This document shows positions 751 to 20,142 of a DNA stretch of 64,000 bases, piece after piece; the stretch's first letter is position 1; every line of letters begins with the position of its first letter. A model generated the notes under the pieces. The model was given only the letters and a program-made list of their open reading frames with translations, was not told where the DNA came from and made no database searches. Source of the DNA: Botryllus schlosseri (Eukaryota); NCBI GenBank assembly GCA_051294905.1, contig CM119378.1, positions 14,260,001-14,324,000 of the forward strand, read 5' to 3'. A program made the translations under genes and the position numbers.

Positions 751-1860
751 GTATCAGTATCAGTTTATTGATAGTTTTATCATTTCACAGCACCACAAGA
801 TTGCGATAGAATGGAAAGATAGGAATGGGGAGAAACAACTTGGAGTAGTCTTGGAAATCGGATACCAACATCGGGCCTAGCCGATGTAAATAAGAGGCAT
901 GCACGTGTACACTACACTGGAAGGAATTAAATAGCGTTGCGGTGGTCAGAGTAGCTTAGGCCCATTTTTAAAATTTTGAGATCCACTTTTCAAATTTGTA
1001 TAGACAAAGTCAAATTTTTGTAAAAAATTTTAAATGTCATCGGCCATTAGTTGGTCATGTTTATGTTTGAAACACTGTTTGAAAGTTGACCAGGGCCGAA
1101 TAAAAATGAAAACTTTTCGTAAGGTTAATTTTCTCAGAATGTGCAACATGGACATCGAGACACCTTAATTCCACAGCGACGATAAAGGGTAATATATAAC
1201 TATCAGTGACGAAAATGAATGACGCATGTGTCGATTGGCGATATATTTGATCGAGGTCCTGTAATCTTGAGGATCGACTAGTAGCCTAGCCTAATAATTC
1301 AGTAGAAATTGCTTGTATTGCGATTTTGAATGTGGACAACTGGACATGCTCGACGACTGTCGGATAGCCGGCGAGATACTGTTTCACATTACAGGTCCGA
1401 CATATGAGCCTACTTGATAGAGCAATCCGTTTTCTTGTATTCCATCCTGATCATATGGTAGTTGTTCTTCGAGGACACGCGTGTGCCTTACTTGTGCGCT
1501 TTTGATTCCGAGGTGAAGTAGTCGTTGAAATATGTGGAACAGTGACCCCAATGAACTAATAAATAAACTTGGCGAATTCTAGCTTCCGCACATATTCTAT
1601 GTCGAGAACACCAAATCTTGTGAGCAACGATTTATCCGTTGCACATCCAGGTCCCATTGCGGCCTTGGCAATGATATGGAGAATCCGATGTTGTAGTTTT
1701 TGAAGTGGGTGAAGAAGTCATTTAATTTCTCAGATGGTCGCAATGGAACTGATGCATACACTTGGAAATATATAGTTTCTTCATAAGTATTGGGCTGAGG
1801 ACACCGAACCTTTGATCAGCGACTTTTTATTAAAGATTCAGTGAAATTAGACATTGGTCA
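751..1860 (-). mobile_element. 5'-truncated L2/CR1-type LINE 3' end, copy B, interrupted by a MITE
   Basis: The tail GTATCAGTATCAGTTTATT is at 751-769. Minus strand 1860-1300 translates, with stops and frameshifts, as LQKLQHRILHII...TDKSLLTRFGVLDIEYVRKLEFAKFIY*...FNDYFTSESKAH...FKSQYKQFLLNY. The left boundary is clear; the 5' truncation point is approximate. Confidence 0.75.
934..1182. mobile_element. TA-flanked MITE (diverged copy of the 56923-57179 family) inserted in LINE copy B
   Basis: The right end GAAAACTTTTCGTAAGGTTAATTTTCTCAGAATGTG...TTAATTCCACAGCGACGA matches 57110-57179. TA lies at 932-933 and 1183-1184, and LINE UTR homology resumes after 1184. Confidence 0.6.
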
Positions 1861-1969
1861 ATAGTCATCTATGATTTTGATATTCGTATTCTTTTTCAGT
1901 TTTATTATATGAGTATGCTACCCCGTCACTGCCGAGACCAAACTACCGTACTGACAGGCGTGGACGTTA

Positions 1970-4690
1970 TTGATATTGGTTGGATCGGATAGTCTAAAAC
2001 AGTATTGTATGGATGATTTTGGTTCTAAGAGACCATCTACCGGATGCTTGATGTACGAAGCGTTTCACGAATGCATGAACGGAAACAACTGCAAGTTATC
2101 GCACAACATTTCGACTTGTAACGTACGTGTAGCAGAGGCTACCGTAATTACAAAGATTGAGGATGCATCCAGGATTGTCACCTTCCAAATGAATAACGTT
2201 ACAAGCCAGTCTTACGACAAATTCTATGTTTCAAATGGACGTTGGTTCAACTCCGGCGCTGCACCGGGAGATTCCGTCGAACTACAAATTTCAGAAAAGG
2301 TGAATCGCGAGACTGACTGTTGCTTTGCGAGAATTTCGAAAATACTCAAACTAGGAACAAAAACGTCGACTGTTAGTCGCGGAAGCTTTCATCCAGATAA
2401 CGAGGATTGCTGGGACTTCCACACTTACAGTGACTGCCGGTTTAACATCCGGTGTAGAAGATCGCACAATATAAGTCGCAGCGAGCAATCTTTTCATGTG
2501 GCAAAGATTTGTTCCGTCACAGAATCGCGTTATGGGGGTTCTGAAGTGGAGGTGCTTAATACGGCGGGCGAAAACAAAACATATTTCATGCCGTATTGCG
2601 AATATCGGTACTTGAAAAAAGCCACAGAAGGAAACTTGGTTATTATGCAGGAATCATCCGCTATACACCGAAGAGCCCGTACGAACTATGGGAAAATATG
2701 TGCAATTCTTCACGAAAGTCAGGGCATTGACGAAACTTTCATCCCCCTCGAAGAGGATTTGAGATATGGCTTCACTTTCGTGGACAAATCTCGTCATCTG
2801 AGGAAAAATGTTCTTGCGTTTTCAACGGATTCTTGCGCGAATCATCAGGATTGTAAACGCATCGGGGTTCACATTACAGCGACCGCCATTGGAAATCATT
2901 GCAGAAAATTGGACAGGAACTTCGTACCATTTTATAAGAGAAATCCACGAAGTCAGCCGAGTGGATTTACGGCCGATTCCATCCAGTTAGCTGTCTCTGT
3001 GTATTCTCATACTTCTTCTGATCACATCGAGCAACCCGTCCTCACTGCATTGTTTATTGATTCAGAACGATGCCTAGATTCCGATGACCAGAATATGTGT
3101 AGAGAGTATATGGAGGATATGTGGAAACTATTCGCGAAAGATTCTTTTGTAGATGACGTTTCTTCCACTGTTGCTGGCTTATTATTAGTGAACTCTCTTG
3201 GTAGTTGGAGACTAAAAATGATAGCACGAAATTCCCTCGATTTCTTCAATCAACAGATAACACTGTATTTGCGGTCAAAGGTGAGAAAATTCGTGGCAGC
3301 AAAACAGGCCCGTCCCACATTTGGCATACCAAATGGGGAAATAATGATACCGGATGAAATAATCGACAATGTAGACCTAGCTTGGAACTCCCCTGACTCT
3401 ACAGTCGACGAAAGAGAAGATGCTCTTGCACATCTGCTTGGTTCAGCGAAGCGGACAGATAAAGAATTCTGGAGAGAATACGAAGATTGGTACACATTTG
3501 CTGCGACATCCTGCAACGACTTGACAGATAGTCATATTGTAGTAACAACATCTCCGATCGGCCAGACCTCAGATTATGTAAATCAACAGATATTATTGGC
3601 AATTATGATATCGCCATCGGTTTCTTTGTACTCAGAAAATGAAATAATAGGAGTCATTGTACGAAGATACGAAACACCAATTATTCAGAAAGCCGTGTTA
3701 AGGCAGATATGGAAAGACTACGTACATCTTCAATTAATCGGCGTTCATGGTCGTTCGCGGGGCGAAAGAGTCATGCTAGTCAGAGAACTTTTCGTTTGTG
3801 AAGCCTTGGAGAGTCCCCCATTGAGATATAGCTCTGAAGAATTTCAGGATTGTGGTAGAAAATCTTTGCGCAGCTTGTCGTTTATGATGCAAAATCACAC
3901 ATGCGAGGAATATTGTAACACGAAGCTTGCGGTTCTGCAGGGAGAGAAACTTACTGCATTAGCAGGTACTGTAAAGAAACACGGAATCGATAGCTCCAAA
4001 ACAGCCGATAGCATTCGCGAAATTGTTGCTGCTAAGACCATTGACGACACGCCTTACAAGTGGATAGAAGGCGGCGGCGGTATCAAAGTGACCCTTAGGC
4101 GTGGGACCGAACTGCAACTTCAACTGGCAATCAAATCAGAATCTGACGAAGTTGAGCGTGACACATACTTACGACTTCTGAGAATTGGAAAAGACTGTCA
4201 TGTATGCTTGGCTCATCTCAACGAACCCGGTAGAGCCTTTCTATTAAGTAGTAGAAGAGATGTTAAAGATACCCTTTCCCCAGATCTTGCTGCTAAAATT
4301 GGTAACAATATCAGACAAACACGCGCGACAACGGTCATTTTCAAGAAGAAAAGAATAATCTGGAATGATTGTTACTTTTCAGGAGGTAGATTCGTCTTTG
4401 CTGACAGTGATGTCAAGCGATCCAACCTGTTGTGCATACGAAGAGAAATATTGTCAAGCAATGAGTCGGAGATATCGTTCGTTTGGGTTTGTCACGCTGT
4501 TGTATCGAAGGTGTCGGATGGCGAAGTCACATTCTTGGTTTGCAGTCTGCATCAGGAGCAAATTCCAGGCATTATTTTCAAGGACGATACTGAGTTTATT
4601 GTCGAAGTCATCGATGTCGACTATGTAAACGCAGACCAATGCAGTACCGAACATCAAAGTAGTGAGAATGAGATGTGTTCAAATTCATGA
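1970..4690 (+). CDS. HELZ2-related protein lacking helicase domains: 2x CCCH zinc finger, OB-like segments, degenerate RNB domain, HELZ2 pre-helicase linker
   Basis: 906-codon open frame; first in-frame ATG at 2009, in-frame TGA at 1952 followed by a possible CAG acceptor at 1955-1957. C-x8-C-x5-C-x3-H motifs at 2045-2104 and 2408-2467. Colinear matches to HELZ2 as recalled: RIGVHIT~EVAVHIT, QLAVSVY~RLAISLF, FFNQQITLYL~QFNRLVAEFL, TTSPIGQTSDYVNQQILLAI~ATSPIRRYLDVVLQRQILLAL, CLAHLNEPGRAF~CLEHVERPGDCF, LLCIRRE~YLCIRLE, FVWVCHA~YTWVAHG, FIVEVI~FTVELL. Confidence 0.8.
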   Translation: MILVGSDSLKQYCMDDFGSKRPSTGCLMYEAFHECMNGNNCKLSHNISTCNVRVAEATVITKIEDASRIVTFQMNNVTSQSYDKFYVSNGRWFNSGAAPGDSVELQISEKVNRETDCCFARISKILKLGTKTSTVSRGSFHPDNEDCWDFHTYSDCRFNIRCRRSHNISRSEQSFHVAKICSVTESRYGGSEVEVLNTAGENKTYFMPYCEYRYLKKATEGNLVIMQESSAIHRRARTNYGKICAILHESQGIDETFIPLEEDLRYGFTFVDKSRHLRKNVLAFSTDSCANHQDCKRIGVHITATAIGNHCRKLDRNFVPFYKRNPRSQPSGFTADSIQLAVSVYSHTSSDHIEQPVLTALFIDSERCLDSDDQNMCREYMEDMWKLFAKDSFVDDVSSTVAGLLLVNSLGSWRLKMIARNSLDFFNQQITLYLRSKVRKFVAAKQARPTFGIPNGEIMIPDEIIDNVDLAWNSPDSTVDEREDALAHLLGSAKRTDKEFWREYEDWYTFAATSCNDLTDSHIVVTTSPIGQTSDYVNQQILLAIMISPSVSLYSENEIIGVIVRRYETPIIQKAVLRQIWKDYVHLQLIGVHGRSRGERVMLVRELFVCEALESPPLRYSSEEFQDCGRKSLRSLSFMMQNHTCEEYCNTKLAVLQGEKLTALAGTVKKHGIDSSKTADSIREIVAAKTIDDTPYKWIEGGGGIKVTLRRGTELQLQLAIKSESDEVERDTYLRLLRIGKDCHVCLAHLNEPGRAFLLSSRRDVKDTLSPDLAAKIGNNIRQTRATTVIFKKKRIIWNDCYFSGGRFVFADSDVKRSNLLCIRREILSSNESEISFVWVCHAVVSKVSDGEVTFLVCSLHQEQIPGIIFKDDTEFIVEVIDVDYVNADQCSTEHQSSENEMCSNS

Positions 4691-5061
4691 TTTATTGAAC
4701 GAAACTGAAAATTCGGTAGGTCGTCATTGATGGATAGGAGAATAGCGTTACGCGCTTTCAGATTAGAATTTGGAGCATGTAAAAGATTCCATTATCATGC
4801 GAACTTGATTTCACCAACACAAATTGCCAACGTTTAATTAGCATTGTTATGTGATAGTTGGGCAACTGCGCATGTGTGCTGTCCACCAGGTGCCGATTTG
4901 TGTTCATTGGTCCAAGTATGTCATTTTTCGAACCTAATGTGTAATGCGAATAGCGAAGTTGCGACGGCCAACATGCAGTGCGGAGAAAACTTCTTCGCTT
5001 GTTGATGTAGCTGTTATATATTCTTCTATCCGCACATTCAATATATTTGATGCGTATATTG

Positions 5062-5428
5062 TAGGCTTACCATGTTTTGGAAATCTAAAAAGAGGACACT
5101 TTTTCAGAAATTTGCAACTTGCAAAACCGGAGTAGAATTCTCAAAAACCGGTGAATTTTTCCCACTTTGTGATCGGTCGACTAAAAAAAAGGTCATCTTT
5201 ACGCTCAGAGCTAAAATCACCGTTTTTCACTCCGAAATACCCGCCGGAGCTTCACTTCTGTGCTAATTTGCGGCATATCACTCGCACTTTGCTCTAAATC
5301 TGACCTGAATTTTCAAAAAAGAGGACAAAATCTCAAAAAAGAGGACAAAAGGGCGTCCTCCGAGGACACTTTCAAAAAAGTCAAAAAAGAGGACAAATCC
5401 TCTTAAAAGAGGACGTATGGTAAGCCTA
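5062..5428. mobile_element. MITE, TAGG(C/G)TTACCAT-TIR family with repeated AAAAGAGGACA subterminal motifs
   Basis: TIR TAGGCTTACCAT / ATGGTAAGCCTA. Homologous along its length to 22585-22968. No adjacent 8-bp TSD (see findings). Confidence 0.8.
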
Positions 5429-5469
5429 CATTCAATATATTTTTAAATCGTTATCAGCAATTCTAATTA

Positions 5470-5953
5470 TAAGTCACTAAGGCTCCGAGTCACAAGTCAA
5501 TCTCACTTGTAAAGTTTTGACTCGAGTCAAGTCGAGTCATTTTCAATTCAGCACCGAGTAAAGTCCGAGTCCTAAGTCAACAGGAAGAGGGTCGAGTTCG
5601 AGTCATGCTATTATGACTCGAGTTCAGGTCATTGTGTTGTGTTGATTTTCTGATGACTCGAGTCATTTTCTCAAAATGCGGAAATTACTCGACTCGACTC
5701 GCCGAGTCAATCTGTGTATTGACTCGACTTGGACTCGAGTGATGGCGCATGACTCTAACGAAGTCATATGACTCGAGACTCAGACGGCCAAGACAAACAT
5801 TTCATAGTAATTTCGGAGGATAGTAAAATATAACCACACTATTGGAATTTCGTTCATCATTGGTACTGGTACTTGAAAATGCAGGGTTGTAATGACTTAG
5901 TTCGAGTCATCCTGCGATCAGAAAATCATGACTCGAGTGATTATACAGCCCTG
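5470..5953. mobile_element. Composite of GACTCGAGTC-rich MITE fragments (CAGGGTTGTAA family), including a 72-bp mini-element at 5882-5953
   Basis: 5476-5640 is the reverse complement of ~53880-54030 and 5710-5880 matches ~53560-53720. 5882-5953 has ends CAGGGTTGTAA / TATACAGCCCTG. Confidence 0.65.
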
Positions 5954-6779
5954 CACATTATCCGCAGAGATGTTTTCTGACACGATATCACAGAGATGAT
6001 ACCGATTGAATATTATGCCATTAGTGTGAAACAATTTGGCCCGCGGTGTAAGATCCCTGCCCAAATCCGAAAATCCTAATATATTGGAACTGCCATATGC
6101 AGATCCATCATCGACGTAGATCGTGTATGCGGTAGTTCGAAGCAGGTTTTTGCCGATGACAATTTACTTACATAACAGCAGTAATCGAGTTATCATTTTT
6201 AAAATTGTTTAACTTCCTATCTTTCATCGTATCGCAGTCTTGCGGTGTATTGAAATTAAATTTTTAGCAATAAATTGAACTGTAGAGCAACCATAACTAT
6301 TTCATGGGCTTATGCGTATCTCATAGCGAATCATCAGTACCGAATACCAATCACTTTTCCACCCAACCCAACTACTACACTGCTGCAGGCATGAAATCCT
6401 GAAGAATTTTGCTGACGGCATGGCCGATGAACAAACAGAACACAGATATGCCTGCAGAATCTGAAATCCGTGAACACGCCAGAGGAGCAAGTGGCACTAA
6501 CACACGCATCCAACGGTAAACAACCTCGAAAGGAGCCGTTATAATAAATTATACCCGTTGTAAATCTATCTTGGGCGAACGTTTCTCGAACTGCGAAACA
6601 TATTTTGACGTCAGAGATGACGGTGACGGCCTACCAGACATTGCGCCGGACCCCACAACGGACACATACCCTAGCTCTGCACGAGCAGCTTCACCAAAAC
6701 ACAAAAACACAGACAACAGATTGCACAAAAAGGAATCAAGTTTCATTGCAACGGAAAAGATCACACCCGCAAAATAACG

Positions 6780-20142
<13,363 letters not shown>

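Follow-up and report, generated by a model that had tools for sequence, protein, structure and literature searches.

A transcribed Botryllus schlosseri gene for a probable stand-alone HELZ2-type exoribonuclease module without helicase domains and with a degenerate active site

HELZ2 is an interferon-induced nuclease-helicase, and its cellular targets are still poorly defined. The protein has an N-terminal array of alternating C2H2-like and CCCH zinc fingers; human HELZ2, an active enzyme, naturally has Asn in place of the second catalytic Asp, and each of the substitutions D1601N (at the third Asp), S1920L, and R1923L abolishes activity (PMC10516660). Ssd1 and its fungal relatives are pseudonucleases derived from Dis3L2, which bind mRNA on the outer surface of the CSDs and in which the channel is blocked (PMC8934651, PMC8097288). 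Here we describe a gene of Botryllus schlosseri that lies at positions 2009–4690, on the forward strand, of a 64,000-nucleotide stretch of DNA (GenBank assembly GCA_051294905.1, contig CM119378.1, positions 14,260,001 to 14,324,000), which is called the window below. Its product of 893 residues probably corresponds to the central exoribonuclease part of HELZ2 as a separate protein, free of the UPF1-like helicases, and acts as an RNA-binding pseudonuclease.

The relationship was recognized at the level of the predicted fold. An AlphaFold model built from 4 sequences was useless, with a predicted local distance difference test score (pLDDT) of 31, and the model used below was built from 21 family sequences (pLDDT 71.4; predicted TM-score, 0.61). 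In a Foldseek search of the Protein Data Bank (PDB) with this model, the top 42 matches all belonged to the RNB family (Dis3L2, RNase II, Ssd1, Rrp44, RNase R, and Dss1; E = 1e-11 to 3e-4), with Ssd1 among the top structural matches (7am1; E = 1e-10, Z = 14.5). VIA-align against the PDB gave Z-scores of 13.8–16 for 36 RNB entries, and the next unrelated match scored 8.6; the RNB core aligned with known RNB domains at Z-scores of 15–16, with a root-mean-square deviation of 4.1–4.7 Å over 258–278 residues. Against the Swiss-Prot models, residues 37–725 of the query were aligned by Foldseek with residues 18–644 of RNase II/R, that is, with the whole CSD1-CSD2-RNB-S1 unit. These results indicated that, as far as the model goes, the RNB fold is retained in the B. 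schlosseri protein. In the AlphaFold database clusters, the top match was a zebrafish-type protein of 2656 residues named 3'-5' exoribonuclease HELZ2 (E = 8.9e-20; query 8–869 to 1097–2109), followed by a protein of 1111 residues named putative helicase with zinc finger domain 2 (E = 1.9e-18) and by a third HELZ2-type match, an annelid protein (E = 2.1e-18). Other RNB proteins gave E-values of 1.8e-11 or weaker with alignments that stopped at about query 725–740; only the HELZ2-type models extended to query 867–869, and their lead over the other RNB clusters was 7–8 orders of magnitude. Because only HELZ2-type matches covered residues 730–869, the C-terminal beta domain appeared to be specific to HELZ2 among RNB proteins. 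The first-pass annotation of this DNA, which was made from the letters alone, had proposed a pseudo-RNB fold with OB folds and colinearity with the central region of HELZ2 as far as a FIVEVI block; the former was recovered in the model (Foldseek E = 1e-11; VIA-align Z = 14–16), and the latter agreed with the HELZ2-type matches (E = 9e-20 to 2e-18), which alone reached that block. A viral origin was also considered and rejected, since the best viral RNB models in Foldseek had an E-value of 4e-10, far behind HELZ2.

In the model, the domains are arranged in the order CCCH, CSD1, CCCH, CSD2, RNB, S1-like OB fold, and C-terminal beta domain, without a helicase domain; all features of the gene given here are on the forward strand, and residues are numbered from the ATG at 2009. 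CCCH finger 1 (C13-x8-C22-x5-C28-x3-H32, residues 13–32; positions 2045–2104) and CCCH finger 2 (C134-x8-C143-x5-C149-x3-H153, residues 134–153; positions 2408–2467) both have the exact C-x8-C-x5-C-x3-H spacing that had been read from the DNA beforehand, and their Cys and His residues were invariant across the four closest sequences. Finger 1 matched Pfam zf-CCCH_DUS3L with an E-value of 0.013 in the window protein and down to 4e-7 in family members, and finger 2 matched zf-CCCH with E-values of 0.5 and 1.5e-5, respectively; the scores for the window protein were below the cut-offs (15.9 of 30 and 10.7 of 20.5). Pfam gave neither a C2H2 finger nor a helicase match in the window protein, so that the two CCCH fingers were the only fingers seen. 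The segment between the fingers, described earlier as OB-like, forms a beta barrel of the CSD1 type in the model (OB fold 1, residues 37–116; positions 2117–2356); its best segment match by hhalign was CSD1 of RNase R (P = 0.0024), the RNase II alignments of both Foldseek and VIA-align begin at query residue 37–40 and at residue 17–18 of the match, and its OB-fold matches had Z-scores of 7–8.6. OB fold 2, the predicted CSD2 equivalent (residues 157–243; positions 2477–2737), aligned with CSD2 of RNase R (residues 178–217) with a segment P-value of 1.1e-4, was matched by Pfam CSD2 in two family members (E = 0.009 and 0.22), and resembled the RecO OB fold (Z = 8.2). The RNB-fold domain, which is predicted to be catalytically degenerate, occupies residues ~245–556 (positions 2741–3676) in the VIA-align and Foldseek alignments, and it is followed by an S1-like OB fold (residues 557–728; positions 3677–4192), into which a partly helical insert of low conservation (residues 596–680) is placed, and where the alignments with RNase II, RNase R, and Dis3L2 pass through the S1 domains of those proteins to query 720–730 and where the OB fold of IF5A was matched with a Z-score of 7.4. 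The C-terminal beta domain (residues 770–870; positions 4317–4618) is common to HELZ2 proteins and not to other RNB proteins; it contains the motifs W-x-D-x-Y-F-S-G-G, LCIRKEI, VW-x-C-H-A-V-V, and F-x-V-E-V, has a pairwise identity of 0.46, and gave weak S1/CSD-like leads in language-model features (score 0.77). Conservation among the long forms of the family was spread over the whole protein, with peaks (0.44–0.54) at finger 1, the S1-like fold, the C-terminal domain, and the motif IV region. The SHNIS motif closes each of the two fingers (positions 2084–2113 and 2447–2476), and an OB fold comes next in both cases, which points to duplication of a unit of finger plus OB fold or to two insertions of a finger; the short-form relatives have the second finger-plus-OB unit only.

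The Arg residue of motif IV (TSPIRRY) clamps the scissile phosphate in active RNB enzymes, and motif I of these enzymes reads D-x5-D-x-DD-A. In the window protein, the degenerate motif I (FTFVDKSRHLRKNVLAFS, positions 2771–2824), placed by the family alignment and the hhalign register, reads ...VDKSRHLRKNVLA, which departs from this pattern: K266 stands at the position of the second Asp, V268 at that of the third, and L269 at that of the fourth. The hhalign path to D272–A282 of RNase R agreed with this register. The equivalent of motif II (CKRIGVHITA, positions 2852–2881) was conserved in all members, is a beta strand in the model, and aligned with the strand WRLWVAIADV of RNase R. The degenerate motif IV (TSPIGQTSDYVNQQ, positions 3548–3589), which hhalign aligned with RNase R 558–578, reads TSPIGQ, with Gly518 at the position of the essential Arg. 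The first-pass annotation had read the same two strings from 2771 and 3548 and had stated that the Asp pair and the Arg were gone; the family comparison upheld this, with the residues replaced in the window protein and kept in some shorter relatives. Because residues that are essential in human HELZ2 are replaced here, loss of nuclease activity is predicted, and we strongly infer that the protein has ceased to cleave RNA. The short forms read D-x7-DD(A/V)xSIE (AIDQLDTEKRDDVLSIE, TLDCEGTRRHDDASSIE, and TLDPIETMRCDDAFSIE) together with TSP-x-R at motif IV, which match the RNB signatures save for a basic residue at the second Asp. Both the D...DD signature and TSP-x-R were kept in P0007, in P0009 of Styela clava, and in the metagenomic fragment P0013, and to judge from these residues the three may still be nucleases; the motif IV Arg was also kept in P0003. 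At the DD position the seven long forms have VL (the window protein), VT, FR, II, SF, CI, and LT, none of them acidic, and their motif I loop varies in length; the Asp pair was also lost in the shorter member P0008 (GY) and the fragment P0012 (IG). The pattern of these residues suggests that loss of activity followed duplication.

Compared with HELZ2, its best structural match, the window protein shares the central CSD-CSD-RNB-S1-like module, the further C-terminal beta domain, and the occurrence of CCCH fingers and an RNB domain in one protein (PMC10516660). Unlike HELZ2, it lacks both UPF1-like helicase domains as well as C2H2-type fingers, its two CCCH fingers stand directly before CSD1 and CSD2 instead of in an N-terminal array, and it has 893 residues, whereas HELZ2 has ~2650–2900; HELZ2 is an active nuclease, whereas the third and fourth catalytic Asp residues and the motif IV Arg are missing here. 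With Ssd1, it shares the CSD1-CSD2-RNB-S1 order and the RNB fold, a lost active-site signature, and maintenance by selection, but it differs in having CCCH fingers and an extra C-terminal domain and would have lost its active site independently, within animals and in a lineage that resembles HELZ2 instead of Dis3L2. The domain order, the RNB core fold (Z = 14–16), and the collinear motifs I, II, and IV are as in RNase II, RNase R, DIS3, and DIS3L2, whereas there is no Pfam RNB match, the Asp pair and the Arg are replaced, zinc fingers are inserted, a C-terminal domain is added, and no PIN or exosome-binding region is present. Short HELZ2-like RNB proteins also occur in invertebrate proteomes, namely A0A2G8LDF5 (named putative helicase with zinc finger domain 2, 1111 residues) and K1R9G7 (named RNB domain-containing protein, 686 residues); in them, as here, the RNB module takes up almost the entire protein (query 40–869 to 48–1105) and leaves no space for a helicase, but they are known from automatic UniProt annotation alone.

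At the sequence level, signals of an RNB domain were weak, and they appeared collinear with the plan of RNase II. The best member was P0013, in which residues 31–71 matched Pfam RNB positions 8–44 with an E-value of 9e-5 and 22.3 bits, below the cut-off of 29.3; the Pfam CSD2 matches of two members lie immediately ahead of this point. In segment comparisons by hhalign, the best match of motif I was RNase R D272–A282 (P = 0.22) and that of motif IV was RNase R 558–578 (P = 0.0063), and a permissive greedy alignment path seeded at CSD2 passed through motif I, motif II, the EExMILAN helix, and motif IV in this order. An invariant block, LAVSVYSHT (residues 327–335, positions 2987–3013), resembled motif IV of RNase R (LALQSYAHFTSP) out of order (P = 0.0088); by position, its expected counterpart is the SVY...PMLP block of RNB, and its resemblance to motif IV may be due to chance. 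Language-model features of the whole protein pointed to RNB with a score of no more than 0.70, and those of P0007 gave nothing specific. Searches of Pfam, the PDB, and NCBIfam with the protein and with a 4-sequence profile gave weak CCCH matches at most, and the gathering score of Pfam PF00773 (RNB) was not reached by the window protein. No significant match (Prob 1–9%) came from whole-length hhalign with E. coli RNase R, RNase II, or an 82-sequence alignment of gammaproteobacterial RNase R/II, and of the hhalign comparisons only those by segment and the alignment path were informative; the contig scan behind the 82-sequence alignment gave gammaproteobacterial sequences only, of 57–100% identity, which made it a poor profile. 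The RNB/HELZ2 match in profile searches that the first-pass annotation had expected was thus not obtained, and the family alignment and the model were needed; the family goes undetected by standard profile annotation, and its recognition needs fold-level comparison.

With its relatives, the gene forms a small family, as yet without a name, of genes from marine animals. When 5.8 billion proteins were searched by word index, three relatives of 874–893 residues were retrieved, with 39–42% identity across 95% of the length. A profile search of 1.84 billion representatives with HMMER retrieved only 17 proteins, all of which were members of the family or fragments and none of which was a canonical RNB protein. 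A word-indexed search with a 15-sequence alignment gave no match, one with the S. clava protein retrieved only itself, and no relative turned up when metagenomes were scanned with the family alignment. The members came from four Logan assemblies of public sequencing runs, one marine metagenome eukaryote, and one named tunicate protein, XP_077969013.1 of S. clava ('uncharacterized protein LOC144422904'), which is the sole named member. Long forms of 864–893 residues have two fingers, and short forms of 689–719 residues begin at the second finger. In six full-length long forms, which came from three other sequencing samples, the protein begins shortly ahead of finger 1 and ends with the same C-terminal block; the helicase-less form, the recurrence of which had been put forward as a point to check, was therefore found again in every full-length long-form relative, all of which end after the beta domain. 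Sample SRR23343704 (the L008 copies, P0002, and P0003) contained at least four paralogues, two of them complete on one 8.9-kb contig, and the family is amplified in the organism of this sample. On this contig (L008:1–8925), the two complete paralogues are intronless and in tandem, at 853–3498 (881 residues) and 5856–8450 (864 residues), and the contig end falls within an apparent fragment of a third copy (SRGVELLLQVS...). A short-form gene that keeps the D...DD signature was found in L006:1–13206 (ENA ERZ25068762, ctg141698_3x_c) and in L007; it was called as three pieces, of 90 residues with a CCCH finger, 380 residues, and 236 residues, with an in-frame stop at 4061–4063 and a frame change near 5173–5206, which are probably due to tiny introns, and the whole unit of 7–8 kb is duplicated in tandem with 95–100% identity. 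Neither helicase-less HELZ2 paralogues nor a helicase-less, CCCH-interleaved, catalytically degenerate family of the HELZ2 type was described in the literature searched, in keeping with the earlier remark that no description of the domain combination was known, nor did any paper found there cite the source runs. RNB pseudonucleases and HELZ2 are each known already.

The open reading frame (ORF) at 1970–4690 runs uninterrupted for 906 codons, as had been reported; it is ~4.6 times longer than the next-longest ORF of the window (195 residues), and the chance expectation for an ORF of this length at the base composition of the window was ~2e-20. An in-frame TGA lies at ~1952–1954, just before the frame opens. 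Because all full-length relatives begin 3–20 residues ahead of finger 1, the true start is most likely the ATG at 2009, and the coding sequence was taken as a single exon of 893 codons plus the stop (2009–4690). Contigs of two older RNA libraries tiled positions 1938–5100 collinearly without a joint within the ORF, and this minimum transcribed span corresponds to an unspliced mRNA with a short 5' untranslated region (UTR), the coding sequence, and the beginning of the 3' UTR. The depth of the RNA contigs was zero at the flanks, at 1591–1787 and 6319–6712, which argues that the signal came from RNA and not from DNA carry-over. Further RNA contigs ended at 6243–6292, and the 3' UTR may extend across the repeats at 4940–5924 as far as ~6292, just past an AATAAA at ~6268. 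The ratio of nonsynonymous to synonymous substitution rates (dN/dS) between paralogues was 0.16–0.29 in the pairs in which dS was not saturated; the nonsynonymous proportion (pN) was far below the synonymous one (pS) in every paralogue pair, and all six copies compared at the DNA level were intact ORFs at identities of only 35–62%. Among the coding variants listed between the reference and the RNA contigs (n = 18), 9 were synonymous and 9 nonsynonymous, giving a pN/pS of ~0.3 from a small partial sample. The locus is thus a real single-exon transcribed gene under purifying selection, as the length and divergence of the frame had led the first-pass annotation to suppose.

Several points weigh against reading the protein as a HELZ2-derived pseudonuclease. 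No significant link with RNB was obtained for the window protein in Pfam, in the PDB by phmmer or profile, in NCBIfam, in the HMMER search of 1.84 billion representatives, or by whole-length hhalign. The model rests on 21 sequences only, with an effective number of sequences of ~3.4, and the global TM-scores were low (0.17–0.28), probably owing to domain orientations that differ between the model and the known structures. The register of motif I is ambiguous by one for the first Asp (V258 or D259), and the loop at 261–265 has low confidence in the model. Expression of the gene, seen here in steady-state RNA runs, is low or restricted, with a contig depth of 5–20 and almost no reads in two deep bulk RNA-seq runs of 2026. 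The link that is specific to HELZ2 came from one Foldseek run against predicted structures, at 11–13% identity. This low identity, seen at the level of structure models, would also fit an RNB-family pseudonuclease not derived from HELZ2, that is, an old DIS3L2-like or independent RNB lineage that gained CCCH fingers, in which the HELZ2 match would come from common extra OB folds and not from descent; the PDB matches ranked Dis3L2, RNase II, and Ssd1 almost equally, and the language-model features pointed to bacterial RNase R families in general. However, the E-values of the HELZ2-type models were 7–8 orders of magnitude ahead of those of all other RNB clusters, the segment from 730 to 869 was covered by them only, and HELZ2 likewise pairs CCCH fingers with an RNB module (PMC10516660), so that an origin outside HELZ2 seems rather improbable.

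The remaining explanations concern the activity and the integrity of the gene. A 3'-5' exoribonuclease that is still active with a non-canonical active site would agree with the activity of human HELZ2 despite Asn at the second Asp, with the position of D259 next to that of the first Asp, and with an RNB core that is as conserved as the remainder (0.37–0.44 identity among long forms), but we regard it as very unlikely: the third Asp, a Mg ligand without which RNase II and HELZ2 are inactive (D1601N in the latter), is Val here, the fourth is Leu, the motif IV Arg is Gly, and seven different non-acidic pairs in seven long forms, with a variable motif I loop, argue for a released catalytic constraint. 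It can hardly be credited that the ORF is one portion of a larger gene whose helicase exons lie beyond the visible region, such as ahead of window position 1. The window has only 2 kb upstream of the gene, and the AG at 1956–1957 could be a splice or trans-splice acceptor; against this, there is an in-frame stop at ~1952–1954, an RNA contig is collinear from 1938 across this AG, the six full-length long-form relatives have the same start and end, two tandem complete copies stand on one contig, and the convergent POLR3B gene lies 2 kb downstream. No Walker-A-type motif was found in the six frames of the whole window, and the earlier claim that the protein has no helicase held in view of this, of the unspliced RNA contigs, and of relatives of 864–893 residues with the same end. 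Nor is there much to recommend a functionless retrocopy or decaying duplicate whose frame is long by chance or youth, which is likewise extremely improbable: the gene is intronless, poorly expressed, surrounded by repeats, and without its catalytic residues, but 893 codons are intact (chance, ~1e-20), the copies compared are intact at 35–62% identity with the low dN/dS given above, conservation extends over all domains, and the gene is transcribed. The reading as a stand-alone HELZ2 module that has become a pseudonuclease is therefore the one that we favor.

The gene is bounded downstream by the last coding exon of POLR3B (RPC2) at 6780–7094 on the reverse strand, which matched residues 1031–1133, the C-terminus, of human RPC2 with an E-value of 6e-53. 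The first-pass annotation had placed this convergent neighbor ~2 kb downstream, with repeats between the two genes, and both were found there. The repeats, at 4940–5924 between the gene stop and POLR3B, are of high copy number, with RNA and contig depths in the thousands, and show many loose ends and internal joints; the part at 5490–5930 is rich in the palindrome GACTCGAGTC. Immediately upstream of the gene there is a further multi-copy transcribed repeat at 1197–1590, and a 46-nucleotide direct repeat (83%) occurs at 286–331 and 776–821 with a spacing of 490 nucleotides. That the gene is the cargo of a transposon was considered and rejected, there being neither terminal inverted repeats around it nor a second copy in the window.

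If the stand-alone module is an RNA-binding pseudonuclease, the two CCCH fingers and the three to four OB folds would serve to bind single-stranded RNA, which the protein would leave uncut, the RNA being held either in the old substrate channel or on the outer surface, as in yeast Ssd1. Bound RNAs might thereby be sequestered, marked, or regulated, and RNA binding would be the selected function, for which the fungal Ssd1 relatives offer a precedent. HELZ2 has been associated with interferon induction, with anti-LINE-1 activity, and with antiviral activity. A link of the B. schlosseri protein with antiviral or transposon defence can be suggested only by analogy, and it is speculation that the protein acts on full-length HELZ2 as a decoy, as an adaptor, or as a partner with a dominant-negative effect. 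In a bolder proposal, which we hold to be unlikely as it stands, the family would be a hitherto unrecognized animal branch of HELZ2-derived pseudonucleases that was freed from the helicases, lost catalysis, and was amplified in tandem, to at least four full copies in one organism. Evolving fast, its members would sense RNA or act as decoys or guards in defence against viruses or transposons, perhaps in opposition to full-length HELZ2-type enzymes or together with them.

A natural and selectively maintained nuclease module without catalytic residues would isolate the RNA-recognition part of HELZ2 and may offer a compact system for asking which RNAs the HELZ2 module recognizes, in which the short forms that look catalytically intact serve as a comparison. 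Within the literature and the searches covered here, the family would constitute an RNB pseudonuclease branch in animals, parallel to fungal Ssd1, and, if this is true, a second independent case of the evolution of a nuclease into an RNA binder.

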